Under the pieces are notes generated by a model, which saw only the letters and a list, made by a program, of their open reading frames with translations, had not been told where the DNA came from and did no database searches. The position numbers and the translations under genes are program-made. This document shows positions 6,040-29,239 of a stretch of DNA of 64,000 nucleotides, one piece after another. The stretch's first letter is position 1; each line of letters begins with the position of its first letter. Location: assembly GCA_011109175.1 (NCBI GenBank), contig RDEW01000006.1, forward strand, positions 421,668 to 485,667. The letters are read 5' to 3'. This DNA comes from Dicyema japonicum (lineage: Eukaryota > Animalia > Dicyemida).

Positions 6040-6968
6040 TCAAACAGATTCGAATATTTCCATTTTTATATTAAAATGAATATTAATAGTTTAGCAATTG
6101 TGGTTGAAAGCATAATAGATTTATAATAATAATCACGTAATATGAGTTTAATCATTTGTCCATTTTCTTTAATAAAAATGAATTTCGCTTTGTCATCTAA
6201 TTGCATCTGTTAAAATAACTAGACTTAAAATATTAGTAATTTTTTCAGAAATATTCGACATTTAAGGGTTGATAAATCAGAACGATCTATAATAATCCAT
6301 TGAACCTCCCTAACCCAATTTATTATCTAAGGCTGCAATGTACCAGACGTCTTCAAAAAACTTAGTTCAGCATCAGTCGAACGAGCAATTTCACTATTAT
6401 CAAAAATTCTCTAAGGATCGCAACTCTAAATCAATAGTATCTATCAATCTTTGATTTATTCTATAACAAAAAATTTTTATAGACATTTTTAAATTTGTTT
6501 AAGTTTTATAGGTAAAAATACAAAAATGCTTTTTTGCTATTTTTTAGAAAATTTACTTTTGCCCTACTCATTAGTAATTCTCGTAGATTCAACATAAGCA
6601 GCATCACCAGCAGGATTGTGTTCATTGACTTTTTTAAAGATGATGTCTCCCTTAGTGAGTAATTTGGCTGACATTTAATTTTGTAATAGCGTACACATTT
6701 CCAAAATGTGCCTTCGCCATTACATTGTTCAAAAGGTAAATATTGTCAAAACTCTCGAATCGCTTGTTTAAATCAAAAATTAAGAAATTTAGATTGTAAG
6801 TTTTAACTAGAATAGATTAGTTAAAATTTAAATTGCCTTTCGGGACCGGGCAAAAATCTTCTATTTCACAAGATTATTGTAGAGAAATAAGAATACCGTA
6901 TTCTACGTACTATTATTAGCAATATTGAATTTTCTGCCCCAACTACTAATTACTAAATAATAAATATA

Positions 6969-9476
6969 CAGTAAACTGTCTTAAATTTGCCAATTCTTAG
7001 ATTTGCCATTTTTTAAGAAATATTCTAATTTTAGTGGAAATTTGCCAATTCCGAAATTTGCCTGATTTTTTTTATAGTTTTAAAAAATTATTGAAAATTA
7101 AAACAATAAACTTTATTCAAGTAGCATGCCTCGTTGTGATTCTAGTGGTCGATGTACAAGACTCACTATCGAACAGAAAGTGCAAATACTGCGTTATAAG
7201 GACGACAACAACTTATTATCATGCCAAAGAATTGCCGACAAATTTTCCTTTTTGTTTTATAGTTAACATTTGCTGGAGGACAGTTAACGCTATCTCAAAG
7301 AGTTGTGGGTCAATTTTTGAACAATTCATAAGTAAAAATTCCTAAAAAAACAGTCAAAGAATTAAAGTTCCCGCAACTTTACGAAACGGTTTTTGAGTGG
7401 ATGGATTCGATGGAATCAAAAGGTATTCTTAATTTTTTTAATTTTAAGGTGCATTGTTGAACGGTGCATTAAAATCCAATTAGGCAGAAAATAATGTTCT
7501 TTCCTAAAAATGCTACAGGAATAATTCAGCCAATTGATTTGGGAATTATTAAAGAATTCAAAGTCCACTTTAATAGACACAAATTGGACTTTTTACTGGA
7601 TTATTGGAAAATAAAACATGTCACTTCATATAAAAAATTGAACCTTAAAGACACTGTTCTACTTATAAAAATGGCCTGGGAAGATGTATCCTCTAAAACA
7701 AACAAAAAAATTTTTTCAAATACTAAAAAAATCGGTTACTAGTACACCTTTAGAAATGTGAACATAAGAAATATAATCTAATACGGATATTCACGATCCG
7801 ATTGAAATCTAAGAATTTGTCTATAAATTATTCTGAAAAAAATTCAATAGATGAAGAAAAAAAAACATCATTATTTGATGACAATGAGATACTCATCCAT
7901 GAAGAAATTACTGAAGTGAAACCCCTAAACAAGAATGAAATACCATCCAAGTTAAGCGAAATTGAATGGGATTTTGTTGAGAATGCTAAAAACGAAGAGA
8001 ATGTCCTGATTACATCTATTAGAAAATTTAATAAAATTATTATTAGCACTTTCACGAGAGCCATAATATTTATAGCATGTGCAGCAAAAAATATAAGAGA
8101 ATTAGTTAGGTTGTTCCAAGCTCTTCTGTTTTTTGCTAGGTCCCTCAGTGAGTCCAGATCGTCACCAGATGCCAATGTTTTCTTCACGGCTTTCAGATCG
8201 TTTTGTAGAACGACCGGGAGCGTAGTTCTCGGTCTTCCACGAAAGCGTTTTACATTGGAGGAGTAGTAATCTTCCATTGCGATTTTCGGAGGGGATATCG
8301 GGTCCAACCTCAGGACGTGTCCAAAAAGTCTCCAACGAGAGCTAATGATCTCGTGGCTTAATGGTATACAGTCACACTTATTTTACAGTCCATTCCGCGA
8401 GATCTTGGATGGCCAGGACATTCCAGGTATGTTTCTTAGATGATTCATGTGAAATGAGTCTAGCCTCTCCAATTCCTCTTTAGAGGTGGCCCAGGTCCCA
8501 GAGTTGTATAGTAGAATTGGTTTTATGAAAGTGTCGTATAACATAATCCTTATTAGAAGATTTATGAATTATTAGAAATAATAAACAAAGAAAGTAAATG
8601 AGAATTGAATTTTATTTCGATGGAATTTAATACTTCATTTTTGTAAAGTAAAACAATCAATAATGTAATTAAAATAACACAGCCAACCATCCAAGGTGGA
8701 TCCGCCGACATTATATCGACGTTATTTATTTAATAACCCCGAAAAGGGAACATCAAGAAAAGACAAACTAAACCAACTAGTTAAGTGATCCCGGTACGCC
8801 TCAACAGGGTCGAGAGGTTTTTCCTATGTTCCTCCAGAGTACCCACGGCTTTCCTGAATAGACGACGATCATCTTTTATTAGAGTTTGAAGAGGGGTGGG
8901 TTTTTCCCCAAATTTCGTGTATTTGAGGCTCTAGCCTTGAATGGAAGAAACGACTTGTTTCTTGAACACACAGACCGATGAAGCCGGAGCCGTTATTTTT
9001 GATTGCGGCGTAGTCAAGCATTGGGGGGTAGATTTGTTAGACGTGCAAGTTTACCTGTTAAGGAGTTGATCTTTTCACAAATTTAAAATGTTAAAACGTG
9101 GCGTCATGTGGTTCACCTTTTGTGGTGGCGCTCAGTGTAGAAAAACACCAAAAAGAATCATTTGCTCTTCCCCATCCAGACTCCTTATGCCTGGATGGTA
9201 TACCTCATCGACGTCGTTGCCTCTTACGATTGTAGCAGAGATCAACTGAAGAAACCACCGGGTCTCACGTGAGTCGTGGCTTTTTAGCGTAGCTAGGCGT
9301 CCAAGTTTCTTTAGGACTTTACACTTTTTTAAATAATTTTTTTTGTAATAAAATCATATTTAATTATTTTCATCGATGAGAAGTTACCCAATAACTATTT
9401 TAAAATTATTGATTAAATTTTGAAATTTGCCAATTCCCAAATTTGCCGCAAAAAATGGCAAATTTGGAGTTTACTT
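6969..9476 (+). mobile_element. pogo/Tigger-like DNA transposon with nested insertions
   Basis: TA|CAGTAAACT...AGTTTACTT|TA ends with repeated aaatttgcc subterminal motifs. HTH RLTIEQKVQIL and DDE_1 PKNATGIIQPIDLGIIKEFK (ORF 7494..7742). The host repeat resumes right after 9478. Confidence 0.85.
8030..8555 (-). mobile_element. RTE-like LINE 3' fragment nested in pogo
   Basis: PKIAMEDY..RFRGRPRTTLP..DL..AKNRRAW C-terminus followed by an (aat)-type tail. Confidence 0.85.
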
Positions 9477-9688
9477 TAATTCCTAAAAATTTAAATATTA
9501 ATTATTAATTGTCACAGTCTGATAAATCGTTACTTACAAAACAAAACTAAATTGTCTAAAATTAAAAATCTACACATTAATAAATGTCGTATCACGTCCG
9601 GGCTGATAAGTCTAATTTATCATTCAAAAACAATTGGTTACCGGACTCTTTTCGGAGGAAAAACGAAATTTTTAATTTTGTCTTAAAA

Positions 9689-10750
9689 CATGTTCGACGT
9701 AGTATGGGGCGAAAATAGGAGACCTTGAAATCGGTCCCCGATTTTCGGAGTTTTAAAAGGACATAATTCATTCAATTTTATCCCAAGAACACAAAATCGG
9801 GCATCCTGGTTTTAGCAAATTGACAAAACTTATATCAGATAAATATGTTGGAATAAAAAATGATGTTATTATCAGATTTATATCAAATTGCGATTCCTGA
9901 ACAAGTTTTAATTCTCTAAAAACATCTGAAGAAATCAAAATACTCACTGTTTCTAAAAATTATCAACGATTTATGGCTGATTGCATCGATTTTAGAAGAT
10001 ATGCTTCGGACAATAATGAATTCAAATGGATTTTAACAGTGATCGATTGTTTCTCCAAGTATGCCTGGGCATTTCCGCTTTTTAATAAAACTGCAGAAAA
10101 TGTAAAAATTTCATTGGAACATCTTTTTCTGACGGTTGGTCCACCAGTTTCATTACATACTGATAACGGAAAAGAATTCCGTAATTGAAATATGACTAAT
10201 TTTCTCACCGATAGGAAAGTCAACTCAATTAACGGAAGGCCTAGAAATCCTAACTCACAGTGTCAAGTCAAACGTTATAACCAAACACTTAAACATTGGT
10301 TAGCAAAAACACTCTTCGAAACAAGATCAGCAAAGTGGGTTGATATTTTGGAAAAACCCGTTTACAAATATACTGTGTCTTGCCATCGTGCGACGAGAAA
10401 ATCGCCGTTTAAATTATTTCGTGGCATTCCAGGTTTCATTGTTGGTGCAGTATCTGACATGCAACTGTCAGATGAGTCAACTGAGGAATGTAATAAGGAG
10501 GTTATGATACATTTGGAGAAATATAAGAACAAAACAAAAAAAACACCAATAAAAATTTCAGAAATGAAGATATAAAGATTGGGGACTTCATACGTATAAA
10601 AAAAGACTTTGATAACAATCAACTGACAAGAAAATTCCCATTGGAAGCTTTTTTGAGAAAGAATAATACCAAATGATTGAAAAGAAATTGTACTCTGTCA
10701 TAGTCGAAGATTCTACAGGAAACAAACAGAAAATATCAAAGATTCGAATT
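9689..10750 (+). pseudogene. Retroviral-type (rve) integrase with H2C2 zinc finger, disrupted
   Basis: EHKIGHPG...FISNCDS, IDF, WILTVIDCFSKYAWAFPL, LHTDNGKEF, GRPRNPNSQCQVKRYNQT (catalytic Glu appears replaced by Lys); several stops. Confidence 0.85.
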
Positions 10751-10831
10751 AAAAAAATCAACAATAATTAGATATGTTTTTACATTCCCTTATTTTCTAT
10801 TATGGATTTGGTTAAAGTCAATTTCTTAAAT

Positions 10832-11234
10832 GGGTTAGGGTGAATTAGAATGGATTAGGATGTATTAGAGAATGAGTTATTTTGAATAAGAGAATGGGTT
10901 AGGGAGAATTAGAATGGATTAGGATGTATTAGAGAATGAGTTATTTTGAATAAGAGAATGGGTTAGGGTGAATTAGAATGGATTAGGATGTATTAGAGAA
11001 TGAGTTATTTTGAATAAGAGAATGGGTTAGGGTGAATTAGAATGGATTAGGATGTATTAGAGAATGAGTTATTTTGAATAAGAGAATGGGTTAGGGTGAA
11101 TTAGAATGGATTAGGATGTATTAGAGAAGGAGTTAGGGTGAAGTGAAGAATGGGTTAGGGTGAATTAGAATGGATTAGGATGTATTAGAGAAGGAGTTAG
11201 GGTGAAGTGAAGAATGGGTTAGGGTGAATTAGAG
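10832..11234 (+). repeat. Minisatellite, 64-bp unit, ~6.3 copies
   Basis: gggttaggg recurs at 10832, 10896, 10960, 11024, 11088, 11152 and 11216. Confidence 0.95.
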
Positions 11235-11377
11235 CATCGGTTGTTTTTATACATTCAAAAGGTTGTTTTATTGACAGAATAGAATGTTCGAACTCTAATT
11301 AAATTGACTTGTAATATTTATCCATAAATTCTCTTTTTATTTTTTATATTAACATATTATTACTATAAATAAATCCT

Positions 11378-12215
11378 TCTGCTCAGATCCAAAAGAAACT
11401 TCTCATATGGATAAGGGATTTTCCTAACAGGACAGATTTCCCAAGTACGTGTTGGAGCACAGATGTCGAAAGACATCATACTGAAGAGGGGAGTTCCTCA
11501 GGGTTCCGTCCTGAGCCCTGCTATTCAATATATTCCTATCTGATTTTCTAACTCAACCGAATATAAACACAAGACTATTGATATACGCCGATGATATTCT
11601 GATCACAGATACATCTGACAAATCAACTTTTTCGGAGAAAAGAATCATGTCATTCATTGGACAAGTTCAGGACTGGTGCACAAAAAGAGGGATGAGATCC
11701 AGTCGCCTAAGGAGGCATCAGAAGCAGCCTTACTCATTAGAGATTCCTAAAGTAAACTCAATGCGCTACCTCGGGATAGCAATCGATGGGAATGGTTCCT
11801 TCATCGAGGACATAAGACGAAAAAGGAAGAAGGCGCTTCAAGCACTCTTATGTACGAGAAAGTTGTTTGTAAGCCTGGAAACCTTCTTGTTCATCTTCAT
11901 GAGGATCATCCTACCGGAACTGCTATATGGATGCGAAGCATGGTTTTTCTCTTGCCAAATAGAAAGAATAATGTTTTTCATGGAAAAAACCAGAAGGTCG
12001 GCAATAAAGTTGGCTTTGGGGAAAAGGCTCTGGGATGCTCTCAGTACTGAAGAAGACATGATTTTAACTCCTGTTAAAAACATCGTAGAGAAAATAATCA
12101 ATGGGATCCAACGATAGAAGATAACTAAATGGAGTGTGTATACATCGGAAGTGTCCAGGCCACATAGGCGGACACGTTTAAATATCCTAAAAATAACTCC
12201 TTACTTACTTACTTT
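11378..12215 (+). mobile_element. 5'-truncated APE-type (Jockey/I-like) LINE RT fragment, RT-A'
   Basis: GVPQGSVLSP, LIYADD, YLGIAID, LLYGCEAW; ends in a (TTAC)3 tail at ~12200-12213. Confidence 0.85.
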
Positions 12216-12222
12216 GGAATAA

Positions 12223-13830
12223 ATTTGGTCTAGTTTGGTTCAGGATCAGCTCCAAAAAATTCAGGGTGTGGATCCGTGGAGTTTGATCCCTGATGACAAA
12301 AAGTGTCTGCGATATATTTGAACACTCCGACGAGGAACTACCTATTGCTGATAGCACTGTCAGCATCTTTGAAGTGATGACAGCTATCAGGGAATGCAAG
12401 GTCAATGCTCCAGGATATGACCACATATCAATGAAACTTATCAAAGAGGGTCCGGATATTTTGTTTGACTATCTGCGATGTCTTTATGATGGGTGTTTGC
12501 GACGACTTGGCCACTTGCCTTTAATATGGAAGAAAGCTGTTGTGAGGATGATTCCAAAACCAGGGAAGCCAAAGAGAGATCCGGCAAGCTACAGACCAAT
12601 TAGCTTAATATGTTCTTTCGCGAAAGTGATTGAACGTATCATTTTCAAAAGGCTAAGCAGACATATAGAAGAAAACGACTTTCTGATTCCGGAGCAGTGG
12701 GGTTTTCGTCCCGGAAGAGGCTGTGCAGACTGTTTCTTTCTACTGAATTCTGAAATCATGAAAGCAAAGGATTCCAAGAGACAAATAAACTTATTATGTC
12801 TTGATATCTCGAAAGCATTCGACAGTGTATGCCATGAAGCGTTGTTAAAGCAGCATCAGCATGAAGATACCTATTTGTTTGGCTAAGAAATTATCTTCAG
12901 GAAAGACAATCTTTTGTGAAGGTGGATATATATCTGATGCAATATCATTCAAAAGAGGATTACCTCAAGGTTCAGTATTGAGCCCTATTTTGTTTAATAT
13001 ATTTATGGACTTAGTTTTCCAAGTCCGAGGAATATTAATACTAGTCTTCTTATTTATGCGGATGACGTAATCGTGGTGGACACATCTCTAAAATCTTCTA
13101 TATCCGAAGGAAGAATCCGGGAGTATGTCGACCAGATTGAGCATTGGTGCAACTTGAGGAGGGCTAAAGCTCTCTGCTGAAAAATCTTCGCACTCCGAAT
13201 AAGCAGTTTGAAAAAGCACCTGAAACAAGAATACACACTGGGAGTAAACAATTCACACAGTCTGCGCTACCTGGGGGTCGAATATGGACACGCAGGAGAT
13301 TACATGGACGACATAAAGGGCAGGAGAAAGAGAGCCTTTCAGTCGCTCCTATGTACACGGAAGTTACACGTTAGCCGTCACACTTACCTGTTTATCTTAA
13401 AGGGAGTTATTCTCCCTAGCCTACTTTATGGGTGCGAGGGGTGGTTCTTCTCTTCGAAGAGGGACAAGATCTTATCCCTCCTAGAGAAGAGTAGAAGAAA
13501 TGCAATGAAGCTTTCCTTAAAAAAGAAACTGAAAGACAGTCTAAACGAGGACGAAAACAAGCTCCTGGAACCAATTAGCAAGATTGTGGAGGATCGGATC
13601 AATGGTTTTAGGAGGAGATCAAAGGTCCAGGACACATACATAAAGCTGTGAAAATAAAGATTAAAAAGCTGGGAGAAACGTTCAGAAAAAGATTAATAAT
13701 AAAAAAAAGGAGGAAGGGTCCAGGTGTGGAGTCCAAGCCTTATCGAGATAAATTAGTAATTGGATGGATATCAAGGATAAATGGTACCCGGATGAACAAT
13801 CCAGGCCAACCGGCGGACTGGACCTATTCC
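12223..13830 (+). mobile_element. 5'-truncated LINE RT fragment RT-B, copy 1
   Basis: APGYDHI, YRPISLICSFAKVIER, QWGFRPGRG, LDISKAFDSV, PQGS, YADD, YLGV; frameshifted. Confidence 0.85.
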
Positions 13831-14660
13831 ATAACTTGTTGTTTTAATTCATTTCAGCGACAGATTTTTGAACTTTTGTCTTTGTTGCGTTTTCAATTCT
13901 TTTGATAATGTTGCAATTGTTCAATTTTTTTGGCTATCATGGAAATAAATTGTGATTCCTTTAGTTTCATTAATGACTCCTGTAACCATATAAGTTTGAC
14001 TCATCAGCCCGGACACGAAGATGGCCCCGGGTTCTCATACTATACGACAATAAATAATAATATATATCTCCAGTTAATAGTTAGCTAAAAACGAGTTTTT
14101 TTGTCCTGTGAATAACCAACATCCTCATTAAAAAACGTAACTACTTTATTAAAATTATTTATATTTTCGTCGTATTTCCATATTCGTTGGTTTAACATTT
14201 TTTCACAAGCAATTATTAGATTCTCATACGCTGCATTTAATAATTTGTCGTCTTCTCACAACAAAATGGGTTCATTTCTTCATCTGATAAAGCGGGAGGA
14301 TATTTTGCCCCCATAAAAAGATAATATAGATTATTTTTAGTCTTCTGGTGGGTGGTACTATGATAAAAAACGATGACTTTCATAGAAGACTGATAAGACC
14401 CAAAATTTCCGTTAGATGAAATAACTGACGAAATCCATCTTTTTATACTTTGATTGAATGTTCAATTTATTGAAAATATTACCGTTTGACTTGGCATTGT
14501 ATCCGTGGAGACCTTGGCCTGCCTCTTAAATGCTTCTTCGAGTTCGCTTATATCCATCAAGAAAAAATGACCCATATAAAGACCTCTCCTTAACTAACAA
14601 CCCCATAGTTCTACAACCACCAGAAAGAATTCCTTGGAGACATTTATTTACGAAATAAAA

Positions 14661-15185
14661 TCAAATCTCACAAATGAAAGACTCGTAAAATTCAAACGCT
14701 TAGGGGACATTTTTCGTTAGCAATTTTGGAAGGAAGTAAGACGGCAACCAACTTGGACTTCCTTCAATCAAAACACAAAGTTACAGTTTTATTAGAAAAT
14801 GCAACCCATCATACTCATCGGTCACACCCAAAACCTTCTCCACATAATCATCTGTGATGTCCTCCCATTGGTCCTCTTCGACCTATTGAATCAGTTTCAT
14901 CTTTCACAGTTTCGAAGAGACGTTCATCAATTATTTTGGCCCTCTTCTCATCTGAGTTGGAAGGCGGGATCTCTTTCTTAGGTCTTCGTCTTTTTCGTTC
15001 AAATTTATCTATCAAATCTTTACAGTGAATGTATTCCTCAGGCTCCCATGAAGCATCCTCACTGTCATATTACCATAAATAAACATATCATAGTTTAGCC
15101 ATTTAACTTTATAGAATTTCTCTTGCTTTTTGCTGACTTTCACATCAACTATTGCCTCCACGTCGTACTCTATTAACTCTGACAT
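14661..15185 (-). pseudogene. HP1: HP1/CBX copy 1 (chromo + chromoshadow); 2-nt deletion gives early stop CPLSV* at 14692-14694
   Basis: Same exon structure as copy 3; ttcaaacgc here versus ttcaatgacgc or ttcaataacgc in the other copies. Confidence 0.8.
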
Positions 15186-15255
15186 TTAATTTAAATTTAT
15201 TTTAAATTTTAATTATTTTATGAAACTTTTAAATTCATTTTTATATTAATAAAAT

Positions 15256-17127
15256 TAATGAGATTGGAAGATGGATGGTTCCGAGTCATACGACCCGTTG
15301 TCACGAGATTCCTCTGCATCTGTGAGGAAGATGGAAACCCGCTTCGCTTCTCCACATACAAGACAAAAAAAACCGATTGGTACAAAAGTTCTTCCTCAAT
15401 CGGTTTCGTCTGAAAATGAGAGAAGGCTATTTCGAAAGTTAGTAGAAACAATGGAATTTGATTGCGGGAACTAGAAACATCTAACTGTTTGACGTTTTCT
15501 CTGTGATCCTGAGATTCTAAATAAATAAGTGCCGGATAAATTTCATGGACTTCTCTTTTCGAATGCAGTCCATTGCGGCTATAGGTTCCACGAATCTACC
15601 ATACTTATTGGCTTGATGGGTGACACCGTGTTATTCACGTATAGCAAATCGGATTATCTATAGCAACTTCCCCAGAAAATTCAGGGGTTGAAGAAGTCTT
15701 GACCAATGGACTCAGGATGTTGAATGTGCTTAATGCGCCTGTCCCCTATGGTTGTTAGTTGTATTCGTTAAGATTGATAAACAAAGCTCGATCAGACGTC
15801 TTTCGGCACCTACACCATTCTCCTAAATACACGTGGAACCATGGCCGTGGTTTCCTTCGTTTCCGACCTGGACTGTTCAAGGAAGGGCCGGATGATCTTC
15901 TGCTTGTGCTGAGGAATCTATTTAACGCGAGTATTACTCATGGATATGTCCCAATACGATGGAAATGTTCTATTATCAGAATGGTACTCAAACCGAGAAA
16001 GTCGGGGAGGAACCCTCTCAACTATAGACCGATCAGCCTCATTTGCTCTATATCCAAGATTGCTGAGCGAATTATCTTCAAAGGCTGAACGAGCACATAG
16101 AAGAGAGTGGATTCCTCCTCGCGGAACAATGGGCTTCAGACCTGGAAAATCCTGTACGGACTGTATCTACTAGATGCACACGACGGTATTGAGAGGTCTG
16201 GAATTCAAGAGACAAGTCAACCTAGTATGTCTGGATCTGTCTAAAGCTTTTGATAGCATGTGGCATGAAGCCCTCCTATCAAGGCTAGCAGCTGCGAAAA
16301 TCCATAAGAAACACTTCATATGGATAAAGAACTAGCTAACAGAACGAACTTCCCGAATACGTGTCGGACCATATATGTCAAAAGATATTACATTGAAGAG
16401 GGGAGTTCCACAGGGCTCTATCTTGAGCCCGCTGTTGTTCAATATATTCCTATCTGATTTTCTAACTCAACCGAATATAAACACAAGACTATTGATATAC
16501 GCCGATGATATTCTGATCACAGATACATCTGACAAATCAACTTTTTCGGAGAAAAAATCATGTCATTCATTGGACAAGTTCAGGACTGGTGCACAAAAAG
16601 AGGGATGAGATCCAGTCGCCTAAGGAGGCATCAGAAGCAGACTTACTCATTAGAGATTCCTAAGTAAACTCAATGCGCTACCTCGGGATAGCAATCGATG
16701 GGAATGGTTCCTTCATGGAGGACATAAGACGAAAAAGGAAGAAGGCGCTTCAAGCACTCTTATGTACGAGAAAGTTGTTTGTAAGCCTTGGAAACCTTCT
16801 TGTTCATCTTCATGAGGATCATCCTACCGGAACTGCTATATGGATGCGAAGCATGGTTTTTCTCTTGCCAAATAGAAAGAATAATGTTTTTCATGGAAAA
16901 AACCAGAAGGTCGGCAATAAAGTTGGCTTTGGGGAAAAGGCTCTGGGATGCTCTCAGTACTGAAGAAGACATGATTCTAACTCCTGTTAAAAACATCGTA
17001 GAGAAAAGAATCAATGGGATCCAACGATAGAAGATAACTAAATGGAGTGTGGATACATCGGAAGTGTCCAGGCCGCATAGGCGGACACGTTTAAATATCC
17101 TAAAAATAACTCCTTACTTACTTACTT
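15256..17127 (+). mobile_element. Chimeric LINE RT-A (5' part like 25077-26270, 3' part like 11524-12215)
   Basis: Starts at a degenerate GSDHRPVV endonuclease end, then KKTDW and RT motifs; sequence type switches at 16438-16449. Confidence 0.85.
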
Positions 17128-17134
17128 TGGAATA

Positions 17135-18750
17135 AATTTGGTCTAGTTTGGTTCAGGATCAGCTCCAAAAAATTCAGGGTGTGGATCCGTAAAGTTTGAT
17201 CCCTGATGACAAAAAGTCTGCCGACATATTTGAACGCTCCGACGAGGAACTACCTATTGCTGATAGCACTGTCTGCATCTTTAAGTGATGACAGCTATCA
17301 GGGAATGCAAGGTCAATGCTCCAGGATATGACCACATATCAATGACACTTATCAAAGAGGGTCCGGATATTTTGTTTGACTATCTGCGATGTCTTTATGA
17401 TGGGTGTTTGCGACTTGGCCACCTGCCTTTAATATGGAAGAAAGCTGTTGTGAGGATGATTCCAAAACCAGGGAAGCCAAAAAGAGATCCGGCAAGCTAC
17501 AGACCAATTAGCTTAATATGTTCTTTCGCGAAAGTGATTGAACGTATCATTTTCAAAAGGCTAAGCAGACATATAGAAGAGAATGACTTTCTGATTCCGG
17601 AGCAGTGAGGTTTTCGTCCCAGAAGAGGCTGTGTAGACTGTTTCTTTCTACTGAATTCTGAAATCATGAAAGCAAGGATTCCAAAAGGCAAATAAACTTA
17701 TTATGTCTTGATATCTCGAAAGCATTCGACAGTGTATGCCATGAAGCGTTGTTAAAGCAGCTTGTATCAGCATGTGTTCCAAGATACCTATTTGTTTGGC
17801 TAAGAAATTATCTTCAGGAAAGACAATCTTTTGTGAAGGTGTGTGGAAATATATTCGATGCAACATCATTCAAGAGGGGAGTACCACAAGGTTCGATATT
17901 GAGCCCTATTTTGTTTAATATATTCATGGCGAGTTTTCCATGTCCGAGGAATATTAATGCTAGTCTTCTTATTTATGCGGATGACGTAATCGTGGTGGAC
18001 ACATCTCTAAAATCTTCTATATCCGAAGGAAGAATCCGGGAGTATGTCGACCAGATTGAGCATTGGTGCAACTTGAGAGGGCTAAAGCTTTCTGCTGAAA
18101 AATCTTCGCACTCCGAATAAGCAGTTTGAAAAAGCACCTGAAACAAGAATACACACTGGGAGTAAACAATTCACACAGTCTGCGCTACCTGGGGGTCGAC
18201 TATGGACACGCAGGAGATTACATGGACGACATAAAGGGGAAGAGAAAGAGAGCCTTTCAGTCGCTCCTATGTACACGGAAGTTACACGTTAGCCGTGACA
18301 CTTACCTGTTTATCTTCAAGGGAGTTATTCTCCCTAGCCTACTTTATGGGTGCGAGGGGTGGTTCTTCTCTCGAAGAGGGACAAGATATTATCCCTCCTA
18401 GAGAAGACTAGAAAGCTGCAATTAACCTCTCCTTAAAAAGAAACTGAAAGACTGTCTAAACGAGGACGAAAACAAGCTCCTGGAACCGATTAGCAAAATT
18501 CTGGAGGATCGGATCAATGTTTTCAGGAGGAGATCTAAGGTCCAGGACACATACATAAAGCTGGGAGAATAAAGATTAAAAAGCTGGGAGAAACGTTCCG
18601 AAAAAGATTAATAATAAAAAAAAGGAGGAAGGGTCCAGGTGTGGAGTCCAAGCCTTATCGAGATAATTTAGTAATTGGATGGATATCAAGGATAAATGGT
18701 ACCCGGATGAACAATCCAGGCCAACCGGCGGACTGGACCTATTCCATAAC
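17135..18750 (+). mobile_element. LINE RT-B copy 2
   Basis: ORFs 17285..17608 and 17749..18120 carry RT motifs. Confidence 0.85.
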
Positions 18751-19577
18751 TTGTTGTTTTAATTCATTTCAGCGACAGATTTTTGAACTTTTGTTTTTGT
18801 TGCGTTTTCAATTCTTTTGATGATGTTGCAATTGTTCAATTTTTTTGGCTATCATGGAAATAAATTGTGATTCCTTTGGTTTCATTAATGACTCCTGTAA
18901 CCATATAAGTTTGACTCATCAGCCCAGACACGAAGATGGCCCCGGGTTCTCATACTATACGACAATAAATAATAATATATATCTCCAGTTAATAGTTAGC
19001 TAAAAACGAGTTTTTTTGTCCTGTGAATAACCAACATCCTCATTAAAAAACGTAACTACTTTATTAAAATTAATTTATATTTTCGTCGTATTTCCATATT
19101 CGTTGGTTTAACATTTTTTTCACAAGCAATTATTAGATTCTCATACGCTGCATTTAATAATTTGTCGTCTTCTCACAACAAAATGGGTTCATTTCTTCAT
19201 CTGATAAAGCGGGAGGATATTTTGCCCCCATAAAAAGATAATATAGATTATTTTTAGTCTTCTGGTGGGTGGTACTATGATAAAAAACGATGACTTTCAT
19301 AGAAGACTGATAAGACCCAAAATTTCCGTTAGATGAAATAGCTGACGAAATCCATCTTTTTATACTTTGATTGAATGTTCAATTTATTGAAAATATTACC
19401 GTTTGACTTGGCATTGTATCCGTGGAGACCTTGGCCTGCCTCTTAAATGCTTCTTCGAGTTCGCTTATATCCATCAAGAAAAAATGACCCATATAAAGAC
19501 CTCTCCTTAACTAACAACCCCATAGTTCTACAACCACCAGAAAGAATTCCTTGGAGACATTTATTTACGAAATAAAA

Positions 19578-20104
19578 TCAAATCTCACAAATGAAAGACT
19601 CGTAAAATTCAATAACGCTTAGGGGACATTTTTCGTTAGCAATTTTGGAAGGAAGTAAGACGGCAACCAACTTGGACTTCCTTCAATCAAAACACAAAGT
19701 TACAGTTTTATTAGAAAATGCAACCCATCATACTCATCGGTCACTCCCAAAACCTTCTCCACATAATCATCTGTAATGTCCTCCCATTGGTCCTCTTCGA
19801 CCTATTGAATCAGTTTCATCTTTCACAGTTTCGAAGAGACGTTCATCAATTATTTTGGCCCTTTTCTCATCTGAGTTGGAAGGCGGGATCTCTTTCTTAG
19901 GTCTTCGTCTTTTTCGTTCAAATTTATCTATCAAATCTTTACAGTGAATGTATTCCTCAGGCACCCATGAAGCATCCTCACTGTCATATTAGCATAAATA
20001 AACATATCATAGTTTAGCCATTTAACTTCTTAGAATTTCTCTTGCTTTTTGCTGATTTTCACGTCAACTATTGCCTCCACGTCGTACTCTATTAACTCTG
20101 ACAT
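19578..20104 (-). pseudogene. HP1: HP1/CBX copy 2; nonsense TAA at codon 25 (20030-20032) in the chromodomain
   Basis: TTC TAA GAA GTT here versus TTC TAT AAA GTT in copies 1 and 3; this is a substitution, not a homopolymer indel. Confidence 0.85.
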
Positions 20105-20174
20105 TTAATTTAAATTTATTTTAAATTTTAATTATTTTATGAAACGTTTAAATTCATTTTTATATTAATAAAAT

Positions 20175-22045
20175 TAATGAGATTGGAAGACGGATGGTTC
20201 CGAGTCATACGACCCGTTGTCACGAAATTCCTCTGCATCTGTGAGGAAGATGAAAATCCGCTTCGCTTGTCCACATACAAGACAAAAGAAAACCGATTGG
20301 TAAAAAAGTTCTTCCCCAATCGGTTTCGTCTGAAAATGAGAGAAGGCTCTTTCGAAAGTTAGTAAAAACAATGGAATTTAATTGCGGGAACTAGAAACAT
20401 CTAACTGTTTGACGTTTTCTCTGTGATCCTGGAATTCTAAATAAATAAGTGCCGGATAAATTTCATGGACTTCTCATTTCGAATGCAGTCCATAGCGGCT
20501 ATAGGTTCCACGAATCTACCATACTTATTGGCTTGATGGGTGACACCGTGTTATTCATGTATAGCAAATCGGATTATCTATAGCAACTTCCCCAGAAAAT
20601 TCAGGGGTTGAAGAAGTTTTGACCAATGGACTCAGGATGTTGAATGTGCTTAATGCGCCTGTCCTCCATGGTTGTTTGTTGTATTTGTTAAAATTGATAA
20701 ACAAAGCTCAATCAGACGTCTTTCGGCACCTACACCATTCTCCTTAATACACGTCGAACCATGGCCATGGTTTCCTTTGTTTCCGACGTGGACTGTTCAA
20801 GGAAGGGCCGGATGATCTGCTGCTTTTGCTGAGGAATCTATTTAACGCGAGTATTACTCATGGATATGTCCCAATACGATGAAAATGTTCTATTATCAGA
20901 ATGGTACTCAAACCGAGAAAGTCGGGGAGGAACCCTCTCAACTATAGACCGATCAGCCTCATTTGCTCTATATCCAAGATTGCTGAGCGAATTATCTTCA
21001 AAGGCTGAACGAGCACATAGAAGAGAGTGGATTCCTCCTCGCGGAACAATGGGGCTTCAGACCTGGAAAATCCTGTACGGACTGTATCTACTAGATGCAC
21101 ACGACGGTATTGAGAGGTCTGGAATTCAAGAGACAAGTCAACCTAGTATGTCTGGATCTGTCTAAAGCTTTTGATAGCATGTGGCATGAAGCCCTCCTAT
21201 CAAGGCTAGCAGCTGCGAAAATCCATAAGAAACACTTCATATGGATAAAGAACTAGCTAACAGAACGAACTTCCCGAATACGTGTCGGACCATATATGTC
21301 AAAAGATATTACATTGAAGAGGGGAGTTCCACAGGGCTCTATCTTGAGCCGCTGTTGTTCAATATATTCCTATCTGATTTTCTAACTCAACCGAATATAA
21401 ACACAAGACTATTGATATACGCCGATGATATTCTGATCACAGATACATCTGACAAATCAACTTTTTCGGAGAAAAAATCATGTCATTCATTGGACAAGTT
21501 CAGGACTGGTGCACAAAAAGAGGGATGAGATCCAGTCGCCTAAGGAGGCATCAGAAGCAGACTTACTCATTAGAGATTCCTAAAGTAAACTCAATGCGCT
21601 ACCTCGGATAGCAATCGATGGAAATGGTTCCTTCATGAAGGACATAAGACGAAGAAGGAAGAAGGCGCTTCAAGCACTCTTATGTACGAAAAAGTTGCTT
21701 GTAAGCCTGGAAACCTTCTTGTTCATCTTCATGAGGATCATCCTACCGGAACTGCTATATGGATGCGAAGCATAGTTTTACTATTGCCAAAGAGAAAGAA
21801 TAATGTTTCTTATGGAAAAAACCAGAAGGTCAGCAATAAAGCTGGCTTTAGGGAAAAGGCTCTGGGATGCTCTCAGCACTAAAAAAAACATGATTCTAAC
21901 TCCTGTTAAGAACATCGTAGAGAAAAGAATCAATGGGATCCGACGATAGAAGATAACTATATGGAGTGTGGATACATCGGAAGTGTCCGGGCCGCATAGG
22001 CGGACACGTTTAAATATCCTAAAAATAACTCCTTACTTTCTTACT
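20175..22045 (+). mobile_element. Chimeric LINE RT-A, second chimera
   Basis: Same structure as 15256-17127; switch at 21358-21369. Confidence 0.85.
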
Positions 22046-22054
22046 TTGGAATAA

Positions 22055-23660
22055 ATTTGGTCTAGTTTGGTTCAGGATCAGCTCCAAAAAATTCAGGGTG
22101 TGGATCCGTGGAGTTTGATCCCTGATGACAAAAAGTGTCTGCCGATATATTTGAACGCTCCGACGATGAACTACCTATTGCTGATAGCACTGTCTGCATC
22201 TTTAAGTGATGACAGCTATCAGGGAATGCAAGGTCAATGCTCCAGGATATGACCACATATCAATGAAACTTATCAAAGAGGGTCCGGATATTTTGTTTGA
22301 CTGTCTGCGATGTCTTTATGATGGGTGTTTGCGACTTGGCCACTTGCCTTTAATATGGAAGAAAGCTGTTGTGAGGATGATTCCAAAACCAGGGAAGCCA
22401 AAGAGAGATCCGGCAAGCTACAGACCAATTAGCTTAATATGTTCTTTCGCGAAAGTGATTGCACGTATCATTTTCAAAAGGCTAAGCAGACATATAGAAG
22501 AAAACGACTTTCTGATTCCGGAGAAGTGGGGTTTTCGTCCGGAAGAGGCTGTGCAGACTGTTTCTTTCTACTGAATTCTGAAATCATGAAAGCAGAGGAT
22601 TCCAAGAGACAAATAAACTTATTATGTCTTGATATCTCGAAAGCATTCGACAGTGTATGCCATGAACCGTTGTTAAAGCAGCTTGTATCAGCATGTGTTC
22701 CAAGATACCTATTTGTTTGGCTAAGAAATTATCTTCAGGAAAGACAATTTTTTGTGAAGGTGGATATATATCTGATGCAATATCATTCAAAAGAGGATTA
22801 CCTCAAGGTTCAGTATTGAGCCATATTTTGTTTAATATATTTATGGACTTAGTTTTCCAAGTCCGAGGAATATTAATACTAGTCTTCTTATTTATGCGGA
22901 TGACGTAATCGTGGTGGACACATCTCTAAAATCTTCTATATCGAAGGAAGAATCCGGGAGTATGAGTATTGGTGCAACTTGAGAGGGCTAAAGCTCTCTG
23001 CTGAAAAATCTTCGCACTCCGAATAAGCAGTTTGAAAAAGCACCTGAAACAAGAATACACACTGGGAGTAAACAATTCACACAGTCTGCGCTACCTGGGG
23101 TCGACTATGGACACGCAGGAGATTAGATGGACGACATAAAGGGGAGGAGAAAGAGAGCCTTTCAGTCGCTCCTATGTACACGGAAGTTACACGTTAGCCG
23201 TGACACTTACCTGTTTATCTTCAAGGGAAGTTATTCTCCCTAGCCTACTTTATGGGTGCGAGGGTGGTTCTTCTCTTCGAAGAGGACAAGATCTTATCCC
23301 TCCTAGAGAAGAGTAGAAAAGCTGCAATTAAGCTCTCCTTAAAAAAGAAACTGAAAGACTGTCTAAACGAGGACGAAAACAAGCTCATGGAACCGATTAG
23401 CAAGATTGTGGAGGATCGGATCAATGGTTTCAGGAGGAGATCAAAGGTCCAGGACACATACATAAAGCTGGGAGAATAAAGATTAAAAAGCTGGGAGAAA
23501 CGTTCCGAAAAAGATTAATAATAAAAAAAAGGAGGAAGGGTCCAGGTGTGGAGTCCAAGCCTTATCGAGATAAATTAGTAATTGGATGGATATCAAGGAT
23601 AAATGGTACCCGGATGAACAATCCAGGCCAACCGGCGGACTGGACCTATTCCATAACTTG
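22055..23660 (+). mobile_element. LINE RT-B copy 3
   Basis: ORFs 22206..22574 and 22439..22819 carry RT motifs. Confidence 0.85.
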
Positions 23661-24479
23661 TTGTTTTAATTCATTTCAGCGACAGATTTTTGAACTTTTG
23701 TCTTTGTTGCGTTTTCAATTCTTTTGATAATGTTGCAATTGTTCAATTTTTTGGCTATCATGGAAATAAATTGTGATTCCTTTGGTTTCATTAATGACTC
23801 CTGTAACCATATAAGTTTGACTCATCAGCCCGGACACGAAGATGGCCCCGGGTTCTCATACTATACGACAATAAATAATAATATATATCTCCAGTTAATA
23901 GTTAGCTAAAAACGAGTTTTTTTGTCCTGTAAATAACCAACATCCATTAAAAAACGTAACTACTTTATTAAAATTATTTATATTTTCGTCGTATTTACAT
24001 ATTCGTTGGTTTAACATTTTTTCACAAGCAATTATTAGATTCTCATACGCTGCATTTAATAATTTGTCGTCTTCTCACAACAAAATGGGTTCATTTCTTC
24101 ATCTGATAAAGCGGGAGGATATTTTGCCCCCATAAAAAGATAATATAGATTATTTTTAGTCTTCTGGTGGGTGGTACTATGATAAAAAACGATGACTTTC
24201 ATAGAAGACTGATAAGACCCAAAATTTCCGTTAGATGAAATAACTGACGAAATCCATCTTTTTATACTTTGATTGAATGTTCAATTTATTGAAAATATTA
24301 CCGTTTGACTTGGCATTGTATCCGTGGAGACCTTGGCCTGCCTCTTAAATGCTTCTTCGAGTTCGCTTATATCCATCAAGAAAAAATGACCCATATAAAG
24401 ACCTCTCCTTAACTAACAACCCCATAGTTCTACAACCACCAGAAAGAATTCCTTGGAGACATTTATTTACAAAATAAAA

Positions 24480-25006
24480 TCAAATCTCACAAATGAAAGA
24501 CTCGTAAAATTCAATGACGCTTAGGGGACATTTTTCGTTAGCAATTTTGGAAGGAAGTAAGACGGCAACCAACTTGGACTTCCTTCAATCAAAACACAAA
24601 GTTACAGTTTTATTAGAAAATGCAACCCATCATACTCATCGGTCACTCCCAAAACCTTCTCCACATAATCATCTGTGATGTCCTCCCATTGGTCCTCTTC
24701 GACCTATTGAATCAGTTTCATCTTTCACAGTTTCGAAGAGACGTTCATCAATTATTTTGGCCCTCTTCTCATCTGAGTTGGAAGGCGGGATCTCTTTCTT
24801 AGGTCTTCGTCTTTTTCGTTCAAATTTATCTATCAATTCTTTACAGTGAATGTATTCCTCAGGCTCCCATGAAGCATCCTCACTGTCATATTACCATAAA
24901 TAAACATATCATAGTTTAGCCATTTAACTTTATAGAATTTCTCTTGCTTTTTGCTGACTTTCACATCAACTATTGCCTCCACGTCGTACTCTATTAACTC
25001 TGACAT
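24480..25006 (-). CDS. HP1: HP1/CBX heterochromatin protein, intact, 151 aa; introns 24883-24905 (23 nt), 24704-24728 (25 nt), 24583-24605 (23 nt)
   Basis: Spliced product MSELIEYDVEAIVDVKVSKKQEKFYKVKWLNYDIEDASWEPEEYIHCKELIDKFE...VEKVLGVTDEYDGLHFLIKLKSKLVAVLLPSKIANEKCPLSVIEFYESFICEI*: chromodomain with Y/W/Y cage, basic hinge and chromoshadow domain. Confidence 0.93.
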
Positions 25007-25076
25007 TTAATTTAAATTTATTTTAAATTTTAATTATTTTATGAAACTTTTAAATTCATTTTTATATTAATAAAAT

Positions 25077-27000
25077 TAATGAGATTGGAAGACAGATGGT
25101 TCCGAGTCATACGACCCGTTGTCACGAGATTCCTCTGCATCTGTGAGGAAGATGGAAACCCGCTTCGCTTCTCCACATACAAGACAAAAAAAACCGATTG
25201 GTACAAAAGTTCTTCCTCAATCGGTTTCGTCTGAAAATGAGAGAAGGCTCTTTCGAAAGTTAGTAGAAACAATGGAATTCGATTGCGGGAACTAGAAACA
25301 TCTAACTGTTTGACGTTTTCTCTGTGATCCTGAGATTCTAAATAAATAAGTGCCGGATAAATTTCATGGACTTCTCTTTTCGAATGCAGTCCATTGCGGC
25401 TATAGGTTCCACGAATCTACCATACTTATTGGCTTGATGGGTGACACCGTGTTATTCACGTATAGCAAATCGGATTATCTATAGCAACTTCCCAGAAAAT
25501 TCAGGGGTTGAAGAAGTTTTGACCAATGGACTCAGGATGTTGAATGTGCTTAATGCGCCTGTCCCCTATGGTTGTTAGTTGTATTCGTTAAGATTGATAA
25601 ACAAAGCTCGATCAGACGTCTTTCGGCACCTACACCATTCTCCTAAATACACGTGGAACCATGGCCGTGGTTTCCTTCGTTTCCGACCTGGACTGTTCAA
25701 GGAAGGGCCGGATGATCTTCTGCTTGTGCTGAGGAATCTATTTAACGCGAGTATTACTCATGGATATGTCCCAATACGATGGAAATGTTCTATTATCAGA
25801 ATGGTACTCAAACCGGGAAAGTCGGGGAGGAACCCTCTCAACTATAGACCGATCAGCCTCATTTGCTCTATATCCAAGATTGCTGAGCGAATTATCTTCA
25901 AAGGCTGAACGAGCACATAGAAGAGAGTGGATTCCACCTCGCGGAACAATGGGGCTTCAGACCTGGAAAATCCTGTACGGACTGCATCTACCAGATGCAC
26001 ACGACGGTATTGAGAGGTCTGGAATTCAAGAGACAAGTCAACCTAGTATGTCTGGATCTGTCTAAAGCTTTTGATAGCGTGTGGCATGAAGCCCTCCTAT
26101 CAAGGCTAGCAGCTGCGAATATCCATAAGAAACACTTCATATGGATAAAGAACTTTCTAACAGAACGAACTTCCCGAATACGTGTCGGACCATATATGTC
26201 AAAAGATATTACATTGAAGAGGGGAGTTCCACAGGGCTCTATCTTGAGCCCGCTGTTGTTCAATATATTCTTGTCAGACTTCCCAGTTCCACCAGATATG
26301 AACACCAAAATGTTGATATACGCGGATGATATTCTAATCATGGATACTTCTGGAAAATCCACTTTATCGGAAAATAGAATCAGGCTATTTGTTGATCAAG
26401 TTCAGGACTGGTGCTCCAAGAGAGGGATAACACTCTCTACCGAAAAATCGAGCCATATGAGAGTCAGTCGCCTACGGAGGCATCGTGTACAGCCTTATTC
26501 ACTTGGCATCCCAAAAGTGAATTCACTTCGCTACCTCGGAATAGTCATCGATCAGACGAGGAAGGAAGAAAGCGCTACAAGCGCTTTTCTGTACAAGGAA
26601 GGTATCCGTAGGCTTGGAAACCTTGCTGTTTGTTTTCACGAGAGTTATTCTGCCGGAACTATTGTATGGATGCGAAGTATGGTTTTTCTCACGTCATAGA
26701 GATAGAATTATACTACTTATGGAAAAATCAAGAAGGTCAGCAATAAAGCTGGCCTTGGGGAAAAAATTATTCAACACCCTCAGTATTGAAGAAGGTAAAA
26801 TTCTTACTCCGGTGAGATACATTGTGGAGAAAAGGATCGATGGGATCCACCGATGGGATAAAAGAAAATGGAGATGAGGTATGTCGGAAGAGTCCAGGCC
26901 GCATAGGCGGACTCGCATAAACCTCTTAACTCCTATAATACGCTTAAATAAAGATTGGATCATTGGATTGCTTACGATATTGAGGGCCGATCGGTCCTAA
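25077..27000 (+). mobile_element. 5'-truncated APE-type LINE RT-A (non-chimeric donor copy)
   Basis: ORF 25995..26699 has LDLSKAFDSVWH, GVPQGSILSPLLFNIF, YADD and YLGIV; its 3' half differs from the array copies. Confidence 0.88.
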
Positions 27001-27039: not shown

Positions 27040-27810
27040 GAATGCTTTATCGCTTAGCAGTTGTGACACGTGTATTGCAATGCTGTATTTGGAAACGATT
27101 TCCTCAATTCTTCCAAAATAATGAGACATCTCTTCATCAAATGTAAATCCCTCACTTTAACAGTTTCCTGATAAACCCACAAATTATGAGTCTAAAAAAC
27201 TCGTCAATACCAAAATGAATCCTATATTTTAATACCATTCCAGACATCATATGCTGCAATGTTGTGTGACCATAATAGTTGTGTGACCATAATAGTACAT
27301 TTCATTCAGGATCTTATCGATCCATTCATGCAGCTTTTGGGTACCACATTTGAAGAATTCACCACCAAGTCCGTCGGGGCCATGAATCCTGTTGTTAATC
27401 TCCTCAGGGTCATTAATCTCCTCAGGGTTTTTATTAAGCCATCCACTGTGAGGAGCGTAAACGTTTATTTTAATTAGAAATTTCTTCGACGGGTTGAGGT
27501 CATCCAGTTTCAATTGCAACACCCGATTTTATCATTCACGCTGTAATAGCGGCAGACTCTCTTGGATAGATCATTCCTAACGGCAAATCCTAGCCCATAG
27601 TGCTTGTTTCCACCTGGAAGGAAGATTAGTCAAAAGTTCCCATGTTATTCTTGGATCATGTTGATTAGTTTAGTCTCCTGAAGGCAGGCGATTGAAATCT
27701 TGTACTTTGAAAAATCCTCGACCAGTTCATTCCGTTTCCAAACGCTAGAGAATCCCTAGACGTTAAACGTGAGAAGGGATAAGTCCAATGGCTTGATACT
27801 GTGTTTTCCA
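27040..27810 (-). mobile_element. RTE LINE relic, internally deleted (endonuclease joined to RT start)
   Basis: LLTFNV, IACLQETK, HYGLGFAV and INVYAP, then GPDGLGGEFFK. Confidence 0.8.
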
Positions 27811-27940
27811 GATATTGCCTCTTTCTTTGTTTTATTTTAATAAATAATATACGATATTGTAGAAAACAAAACGTTAATAAATAATATAAATTAAAAAATA
27901 TTTTAAAAAATCATATAAATAATTAATTTAAATATTATTG

Positions 27941-28641
27941 ATGGTTGTGAAGAGAGTAACGTTTAAGGAAGATGAGAACAAAACTCACCATATAAGAGCA
28001 TACGAGGATGAGGATTTTGAGTACCAAGAAGAGAGTGTGAATATATTTGAAGAGGACGACGCAGAAGAGAGTGATGAGGAAATTGAAAGGGAAGTTAAGG
28101 AAAAAATACACGGAATTCCGATAACCCCATTTAACATGAACGACGAATTGGAAGAAGGATTCATTCTCCAAGATGGAATGTACGTAATGTCAGGTGTGAA
28201 GAGAATTTGGGATGATTGGTTGGATAACATTGACCACGTGGTTTATGAGCCCAACCGAGAACCTTGTAGGGAGAATGAGGAGAAAGATGAACCTGTGAAC
28301 AGAGATGCCATTCAGGAGATTCGGGGATTTTTAAACCCCGGAGAATCCGTGTTGGAAGCAATTCGGAGATTTGGTGGAGAATCCAAATGTGCGAATCAGT
28401 GGTGGTCGAAGAAGAGGAAGAACACGACAGATTTTTCTCAAGGGAACAAGAAGTCATTGTTGCGTCTTACGGAACAGGCTGACTTGCTAGTGAGTGAGGG
28501 GAAATGTACGTGTATCAGCATACTGGTGAGAGAATGGGGGAAATGTTGGGGAAGAGGACAGAATCTGCTATTCTAGTCGACTTGTACCCCATGAGAATGG
28601 AGATTAGTGATGATGCTACTTACGATATGTTTGTTGATTGA
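27941..28641 (+). CDS. CD2BP2: CD2BP2 / U5-52K (LIN1)-like; one G missing at ~28498-28501; no GYF domain found
   Basis: GIPITPFNMNDELEEG, DDWLDNID, LNPGESVLEAIRRFG, LTEQADLLVSEG; the shifted frame continues EMYVYQHTGERM...DDATYDMFVD*. Confidence 0.8.
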
Positions 28642-29239
28642 TTTTTGTATTTTATTATATTGTCTTTTATATGTCAATGTTGTTTTTAAGTGGCTTGCAG
28701 GAAAACAACTACAAAAGCAGACATTCACAGAGATCCGTCAGGTATATTTGGAGTGACGCAGAATTCGAAAGTGGACCAAGATAAGAAAAGTGGTGGTTAC
28801 TACATAGGTGTTGTAGAGTTTGAGCCCAATTGTATGATGAGATTGATGTTACAAGGAGAGACTATATTTGAGAAATTAGTAGGCCGGAAATAATAGGACA
28901 ACATTAGAAGATTTAATGCAAATATAAAAAAATAAGTAAATGGGAATTGAATTTATTTTAGATGGAATTTAATACTTCATTTTTTGTAAAGTAAAACAAT
29001 CAACTCCACCTACATTATCGACGTGTTGCTTCTCACGATTGCAACAGAGATCACCTGGAGAAGCCACCGGTTCTCACGTGTGTTGTGGCTTTTTAGTGTA
29101 GCTAGGCGTCCAAGTTTCATTAGGAAGTGAAGCGATTCTACACTTTTTTAAATAAATTTTTTTTCGTAATAAAATCAAATTTAGTTATTTTTATCGATGA
29201 GAAGTTTCTCAATAACTATTTTAAAAAAATTAAAACACG

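Follow-up and report, generated by a model that had tools for sequence, protein, structure and literature searches.

Non-allelic homologous recombination (NAHR) between transposable elements gives rise to tandem gene duplications, such as Bar in Drosophila, and requires long near-identical tracts. In human rearrangements mediated by pairs of Alu elements, chimeric Alu elements with short microhomology are formed, and break-induced replication mediated by microhomology (MMBIR), microhomology-mediated end joining (MMEJ) and single-strand annealing (SSA) have been proposed (Song et al. 2018, PMC6071635). The HP1 paralogues of Drosophila pass through a 'revolving door' of birth and death, for which a link to conflict with selfish elements has been proposed (Levine and Malik 2013, PMC4049844). 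Here we analyzed 64,000 nucleotides of the octopus-parasitic dicyemid Dicyema japonicum (GenBank assembly GCA_011109175.1, contig RDEW01000006.1, positions 421,668 to 485,667 of the forward strand; hereafter the window), which hold a tandem array of 4.9-kb units that carry an HP1-type gene and are joined through relics of long interspersed nuclear elements (LINEs). We consider it highly probable that this array is a real DNA-level tandem duplication in D. japonicum, which originated at a LINE junction and then decayed.

Tandem array and its LINE edges

Self-BLAST of the window revealed a head-to-tail tandem array of 3.16 units at 11379-26929 (positions are those of the window throughout). The segment 11379-22022 pairs with 16292-26929 (10.7 kb, 94.7% identity) and 11379-17103 pairs with 21213-26929, and there is a weak match (71%) between 11379-12190 and 26113-26929. 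The 12-mer TTCAATATATTC, which belongs to a conserved reverse transcriptase (RT) motif, occurs in the window solely at 11524, 16438, 21358 and 26259. Its spacing reproduces exactly the unit lengths of 4914, 4920 and 4901 bp that a preliminary description of this DNA had reported. That description also set the limits of the array at 11524-26270; the array itself stands, with its limits corrected to 11379 on the left and about 26929-26960 on the right. No N bases, and hence no assembly gap, are present in the window.

The array is bounded by two LINE relics, termed L (left) and R (right), both on the plus strand, and the units contain a third, more diverged relic, RT-B (Table 1). L and R start abruptly, at 11379 and 25691 respectively, while copies of their families extend further 5'. 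Reading frames of the LINE relics are broken throughout, with Pfam RVT_1 matches of 4e-28, 9.6e-16 and 4.7e-11. The first of these comes from an open reading frame (ORF) in R (25995-26699), whose best solved relatives are the RTs of R2 and of LINE-1 ORF2. RT-B matches RVT_1 at 9.6e-16 and 1.5e-6, and in the region of this conserved motif it shares 68.6% identity with R. Judged by the type of RT domain, L, R and RT-B are all relics of retrotransposons lacking long terminal repeats (non-LTR, or LINE, elements), with 5' truncation in the case of L and R.

More than 25 loci in the genome match L (11379-12190) over its full length at 88-93% identity, and these cross the breakpoint uninterrupted. 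The LINE part of R (25691-26929) has genome relatives of its own (89-93% identity), which span query positions 615-1853, again across the breakpoint. Loci of the L family are 93-98% identical to L on the left side of the breakpoint and 75-79% identical to the left part of the junction elements; on the right side, identity is 88-93% to both L and the junctions. Copies of the R family (n = 4) show the reverse, being 92-98% identical to the left parts of both the junctions and R, 88-90% identical to the right part of R, and 72% identical to the right part of the junctions. For J1 (Table 1), identity to R-family loci is 92-96% on its left side and 72% on its right side. Because the family loci match L or R throughout and the junctions match each family on one side of the breakpoint only, two separate parental families are indicated. 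L and R are thus natural members of two LINE families that are ∼75% identical, and only the junction elements are chimeric.

A single switch at 12 shared nucleotides

To place the switch, we aligned four sequences with one another, namely the left and right edges (L and R) and the internal junctions M1 and M2. Both M1 and M2 are R-type to the left of the 12-mer and L-type to the right of it. At sites on the left that discriminate between L and R, both junctions are R-type in every case (31/31) and L-type in none. On the right, M1 is L-type at 151 of the 155 discriminating sites and R-type at the other 4, and M2 is L-type at 145 and R-type at 10. The 12-mer is bordered directly by 11523, where the last R-type site lies, and by 11536, where the L-type sites begin (both in L coordinates). 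In L, the 12-mer is preceded by ...CTGCTA and followed by CTATCTGAT; in R, it is preceded by ...GCTGTTG and followed by TTGTCAGAC.

L and R are 74.8% identical across 816 aligned bases, and their longest identical runs measure 18, 16, 13, 12, 12 and 12 nt. The run in which the switch occurs is therefore one of three 12-nt runs and one of six runs of at least 12 nt. With six such runs to choose from, the conserved RT motif would be one joining opportunity among several.

Much of the preliminary description of the junctions is borne out by these comparisons. The flanking strings that it gave for the two donors are reproduced in the four-way alignment, the junction RTs are indeed chimeric with one switch in each, and the family comparison and site counts agree that two diverged LINE RT relics in the same orientation served as the joining substrates. 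Its placement of the switch within the 12-mer of the conserved motif also holds, but its term 'crossover' fits poorly with partners that are 74.8% identical and share no run longer than 18 nt. Likewise, the copies that it called 'RT-A' are chimeric, but not from the starts proposed (15256, 20175 and 25077), as LINE sequence begins at 15871, 20791 and 25691. The interval 15256-15870 was considered as LINE sequence and ruled out: it has no DNA or tblastx similarity to the family copies, whose alignments stop at 15871 / 25691.

LINE reverse transcriptases are known for template switching, and the switch lies within a conserved RT-coding motif. One could hence imagine an RNA-level chimera, in which RT passed at the motif from one LINE RNA to another and the resulting hybrid element was inserted twice. 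However, the high identity between units reaches past the LINE into DNA of other kinds, namely the HP1-type gene and its upstream region on the left and RT-B and the end of a transposon-like insertion on the right. The junction LINEs are also truncated 5' at exactly the same point as R and have the same 3' end as L, and no copy of the junction type is found elsewhere among the scored genome matches. These data make an RNA-level origin extremely improbable.

Table 1. Features of the array and of the DNA that it carries (strand '.', no orientation given)
Feature	Position	Strand	Description	Basis
L	11379..12242	+	Relic of LINE family 'L', 5'-truncated, with the 3' part of RT; left joining partner	Genome copies
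12-mer in L	11524..11535	+	TTCAATATATTC, encodes F-N-I-F; switch interval	Four-way alignment, site counts
RT-B	12247..13651 (also ~17160-18566, 22079-23473)	+	Third, more diverged LINE RT relic	RVT_1
Dispersed repeat, right part	14049..14535	.	Interrupted at 9585/14049	Uninterrupted copies L004, L010
HP1-type gene, unit 1 copy	14661..15185	-	Exons 15185-15085, 15061-14908, 14882-14785, 14761 onward	
Unique 685 bp	15186..15870	.	HP1 start codon to LINE relic; presumed promoter; copied in all units	
J1	15871..17155	+	Chimeric LINE relic; R-family to 16437, L-family from 16450	Family comparison, site counts
HP1-type gene, unit 2 copy	19578..20104	-	Stop at codon 25	
J2	20791..22074	+	Second copy of the J1 chimeric relic	Four-way alignment, site counts
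HP1-type gene, unit 3 copy	24480..25006	-	Sole open copy; exons 25006-24906, 24882-24729, 24703-24606, 24582-24480	
R	25691..26960	+	5'-truncated relic of LINE family 'R'; right joining partner; 12-mer at 26259-26270	Genome copies
Unit 1	11524..16437	+	4914 bp	Spacing of 12-mer
Unit 2	16438..21357	+	4920 bp	Spacing of 12-mer
Unit 3	21358..26258	+	4901 bp	Spacing of 12-mer

Origin and history of the array

The ancestral locus would have had the order L, RT-B relic, end of an insertion bounded by terminal inverted repeats (TIRs), dispersed repeat, HP1-type gene (minus strand) with 685 bp upstream, and R, with the LINE relics all in the same orientation. In a first step, a break or stalled fork in R would have led to a join with L, or a restart in L, on the chromatid of the sister or homologue. 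It would have used the 12-nt identity TTCAATATATTC amid 75%-identical sequence and produced the arrangement L-X-J-X-R, with one chimeric LINE (J). MMEJ, MMBIR-type template switching and a very short homeologous exchange are candidate processes for this step. A homologous crossover normally needs identity far longer than runs of 18 nt. Given that the longest identical run between L and R is 18 nt, that the switch run is 12 nt, and that overall identity is 74.8%, a microhomology-mediated join appears more likely than a homologous crossover for the first duplication. A long near-perfect tract at the exchange point, as expected for classical NAHR, is missing from L and R; the hallmarks of a microhomology-mediated, repeat-guided join (elements in the same orientation, a chimeric junction repeat, and one clean switch) are all present.

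In a second step, unequal exchange or gene conversion between long identical 4.9-kb units would have copied J and thereby yielded three units. We favor exchange between units as the source of the third because the two junctions are copies, the second of the first. The third step can be read directly from the locus: the units have since diverged, and disabling lesions have arisen in two of the three HP1 copies. Pairwise, units differ by 76-126 substitutions (1.6-2.6%) plus 20-24 indel events. Among the variable sites, transitions outnumber transversions (91 vs 61), and private substitutions number 78 in unit 2, 47 in unit 3 and 27 in unit 1.

The relationships among the units (U1 to U3) shift along their length, with ((U1,U2),U3) in the first 700 bp and at 11774-12273, and ((U1,U3),U2) at 12273-13258 and 15003-16002. 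A simple two-step history, comprising one duplication and one unequal crossover, was rejected as a full account on this basis. For the left side it predicts ((U2,U3),U1) and for the right side ((U1,U2),U3), as opposed to the observed grouping, which is ((U1,U2),U3) on the left, with two blocks of ((U1,U3),U2). Another candidate, ectopic conversion of unit 3 from other LINE copies, was considered for the 23 differences private to this unit at 11790-12207. It gained no clear support, as 8 of these match the family consensus and 15 are derived, being private, rare in the family and in many cases G-to-A.

Reliability of the assembly

The D. japonicum assembly, with 67.5 Mb in 377 scaffolds, a repeat content of 49% and a heterozygosity of 1.24%, was made by merging a Platanus assembly (Illumina) with a Falcon assembly (PacBio, reads up to 65 kb), followed by HaploMerger (PMC6736024). 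Several points weigh against a duplication of the form that we propose. The copy number of three rests on one assembly of a pooled sample, with heterozygosity of 1.24%. Two-thirds of the inter-unit indel blocks (22/33) are single bases beside an identical base, and these may be residual long-read consensus errors. The shifting tree shape excludes a single unequal crossover and calls for extra exchange, conversion, or haplotype switching in the assembly. Finally, MMEJ, MMBIR and a short homeologous crossover are not separable from sequence alone.

These points bear on whether the array could be an assembly artefact, that is, a single unit or plain duplication whose divergent haplotypes were set in tandem during the Platanus/Falcon merge. 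Such an error would be in line with the combination of short and long reads, the pooled and heterozygous sample, and the use of HaploMerger (PMC6736024). Unit divergence (1.6-2.6%) falls within the allelic range, the homopolymer-type single-base indels hint at imperfect polishing, and the ((U1,U3),U2) segments could be haplotype switches. However, the chimeric junction demands a real join, as L and R have only 12 identical bases there, and there is no gap in the window. The three units have three distinct sets of substitutions with a natural transition bias, and the two junctions and the flanks are mutually consistent. We therefore regard an artefact as quite improbable; at most it puts the third unit in doubt, not the duplication or its mechanism. 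At least one real duplication is secure, since a junction sharing 12 bases would lie beyond the reach of k-mer or overlap mis-joining. As for the lesions in the HP1 copies, the 2-nt loss in unit 1 lies outside any run and the stop in unit 2 arises from substitutions, both as read from the single assembly.

An HP1-type gene in each unit

Each unit contains a small minus-strand gene of four exons, separated by GT..AG introns of 23, 25 and 23 nt, with the layout chromodomain, hinge, chromoshadow domain. An AATAAA lies 3' of the stop codon. The mean intron in the D. japonicum genome is 38 bp (PMC6736024), and introns of 23-25 nt fit with this tendency to tiny introns. Pfam searches were made exon by exon. 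Exon 1 matches Chromo with 26.7 bits (cut-off 25.1, profile positions 1-27) and exon 2 with 18.7 bits (profile positions 29-53), and exon 4 of unit 3 matches Chromo_shadow with 32.4 bits (cut-off 22.4), exon 4 of unit 2 being identical. The exon 1 translation (...IEYDVE...KVKWLNYD), read by eye, places Y7, W29 and Y32 at the positions expected for an aromatic cage, using as a pattern the Y, W and Y of the methyl-lysine cage of fly HP1a. Based on domain content, the cargo is a real HP1-type (CBX1-3-5) gene. The 685 bp between its start codon and the LINE relic have no DNA or tblastx match outside the array.

All three copies were carried along with the unit, as the preliminary description had stated, but they are no longer all intact; only the copy in unit 3 is open. 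In unit 1, a 2-nt deletion at 14695 leads to a stop at 14692-14694 (KCPLSV*), where the undeleted frame would end at 14661. The deletion costs the chromoshadow domain its last 11 residues, and exon 4 consequently scores 16.3 bits, under the Chromo_shadow cut-off. In unit 2, codon 25, within the chromodomain, is changed from TAT to TAA at 20029-20030, and there are three further replacements (V-to-I, K-to-E and E-to-V). Variants specific to single units include those at 15016, 15044 and 15137. Coding differences between the copies comprise 5 that are silent and 5 that change an amino acid or are nonsense, numbers that are too small to show selection.

One block stands out as being more similar between units. 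In 13757-15003, which covers the HP1 gene and its 3' flank, there are 11 variable sites in 1250 bp, compared to 141 in 3687 bp elsewhere (Fisher p = 1e-8), and divergence between units is a quarter of that in the parts derived from LINEs. Within it, the non-coding flank has 9 substitutions in 961 bp and the gene 10 in 525 bp. As the flank is less diverged than the gene itself, there is no evidence of coding constraint here, and the similarity of the block would have another cause. Local homogenization could account for it, as could faster decay of the LINE relics.

The preliminary description had inferred a change in the dosage of a TE-silencing factor, possibly through a copy-number-variable array. 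With unit 1 frameshifted, unit 2 stopped at codon 25, and only unit 3 intact, the assembly contains one open copy, and a rise in dosage is therefore unsupported. On an adaptive reading, the array would be kept for its benefit, extra copies of an HP1 that silences transposable elements being useful and varying in number among isolates. In its favor, each copy was duplicated whole, with at least 1.25 kb of identical upstream DNA and more than 3 kb downstream, and the gene-bearing block is the less variable one (11/1250 bp vs 141/3687 bp; p = 1e-8). The genome also has at least 10 chromoshadow loci and a separate 3.8-kb HP1-type array on C24, and HP1 families turn over quickly in flies (PMC4049844). 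Against this, two of the three copies are disabled, by the codon 25 stop and by the frameshift that truncates the chromoshadow domain, and the low divergence of the block is more pronounced in its non-coding flank (9/961 bp) than in the gene (10/525 bp). The ratio of 5 amino-acid-changing or nonsense differences to 5 silent ones offers too few events to detect selection. Retention for dosage thus seems unlikely. Most probably, the locus is a young, lineage-restricted set of HP1 paralogues in the course of birth and decay, with no working three-fold dosage.

An insertion in the left flank and other repeats

The left part of the array overlaps a 4.46-kb insertion (9586-14048) in a dispersed repeat. 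The insertion has short TIRs (GTCGTAT...ATACGAC) and a duplicated AATAAAT-like target, and it holds a 64-bp minisatellite, L and RT-B. Two copies of the dispersed repeat elsewhere (L004:1180-1424 and L010:182-366) run unbroken across the 9585|14049 join. The right end of the insertion is copied in every unit, in agreement with the preliminary observation that a transposon end was duplicated along with the gene. In a search for a transposase or integrase, three ORFs at 9963-10622 were compared with Pfam, and none had a match with E of 0.01 or less. In L004 (G000:C313:464787-468025), the host repeat is itself tandemly duplicated, with a 97-bp period and a 70-bp piece present at 1180-1249 and 1277-1346.

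The minisatellite (10829-11233), with 6.3 copies that are 97% identical, is the immediate left neighbor of the L relic and falls outside the 4.9-kb array. At a greater distance, the whole array is flanked by a ∼210-bp direct repeat (9201-9405 and 29011-29226, 84% identical), which may be merely a dispersed repeat. Similar small repeat families occur at 2381-2586 / 6752-6968 and at 37417-37639 / 41507-41736 / 51087-51323 / 53023-53257. In the right flank, six ORFs at 27247-29909 were likewise without a Pfam match at the same threshold (E up to 0.01).

HP1-type genes elsewhere in the genome

Genome-wide, only three DNA-level copies of this HP1-type gene were found. The nearest paralogue (on C179) shows ∼50% protein identity in the chromodomain and has an intron position in common. 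In total, chromoshadow loci in the genome number at least 10, and there are more than 40 hits to the chromodomain. The genome paper for D. japonicum mentions neither HP1, chromo domains nor tandem arrays (PMC6736024).

A separate HP1-type tandem array (L055, C24:1275000-1284999) has a 3.8-kb period, units that are 96% identical, and a micro-intron. Its protein reads MPFKSKK...EFEVEDIID...KRYLVKWVGYS, and there are at least 5 units on C24 and 2 on C315 (chromodomain hits at C24:1276984-1336304 and C315:2517-6418). No DNA similarity was found between this array and the 4.9-kb unit. In addition, some HP1-type loci form pairs with identical Pfam scores (C301:506897-507410 / C342:187135-187648 and C246:601398-601786 / C315:390526-390910), and these may represent alleles whose scaffolds were left unmerged, or segmental duplicates of very recent origin.

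One could speculate that the HP1-type genes of D. japonicum make up a fast-turning family whose copy number has been reshaped repeatedly by the abundant relics of transposable elements nearby, and that the present array represents a copy-number polymorphism that is still segregating, an intact copy being kept by selection while its neighbors decay. We regard this broader proposal as doubtful. If true, the present locus, the 3.8-kb array on C24 and the other clusters would all be examples, and spiralians would have their own counterpart to the fly HP1 'revolving door', one in which the birth mechanism can be followed to the base.

Comparison with known systems

The mechanism is of a known kind, and the locus is a fresh instance of a known process. 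Its interest lies in being a base-resolved case of dead retrotransposons making new gene copies, in which both parents persist next to the hybrids and the family of each parent can be told. The join drew on microhomology between quite diverged elements, rather than on long homology. For dicyemid biology, it provides one dated example of the apparent expansion of HP1-type chromatin readers in a genome of ∼5,000 genes and 49% repeats. It does not show dosage adaptation, since two of the three copies are broken.

As in Alu/Alu rearrangements, two retroelements in the same orientation flank the duplicated segment, a hybrid element was formed, and the breakpoint lies in a short identity shared by diverged repeats. 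Unlike in those rearrangements, the substrates here are LINE RT-coding relics from two families that are ∼75% identical, in a dicyemid, and the outcome is a fixed or assembled triplication as opposed to a deletion or duplication that arose de novo in a patient. The layout of repeat, unique segment, hybrid repeat, unique segment and repeat, and expansion by exchange between units, are also those of classical NAHR. The first step nevertheless differs in using a 12-nt switch between elements whose longest identical run is 18 nt, and it is the second step, unit against unit, that fits NAHR. Finally, like the genes of the fly 'revolving door', these are lineage-restricted HP1-type genes born by duplication and often lost or pseudogenized, but they belong to another phylum, and the duplicates differ from one another by just a few per cent, with two of them already broken.

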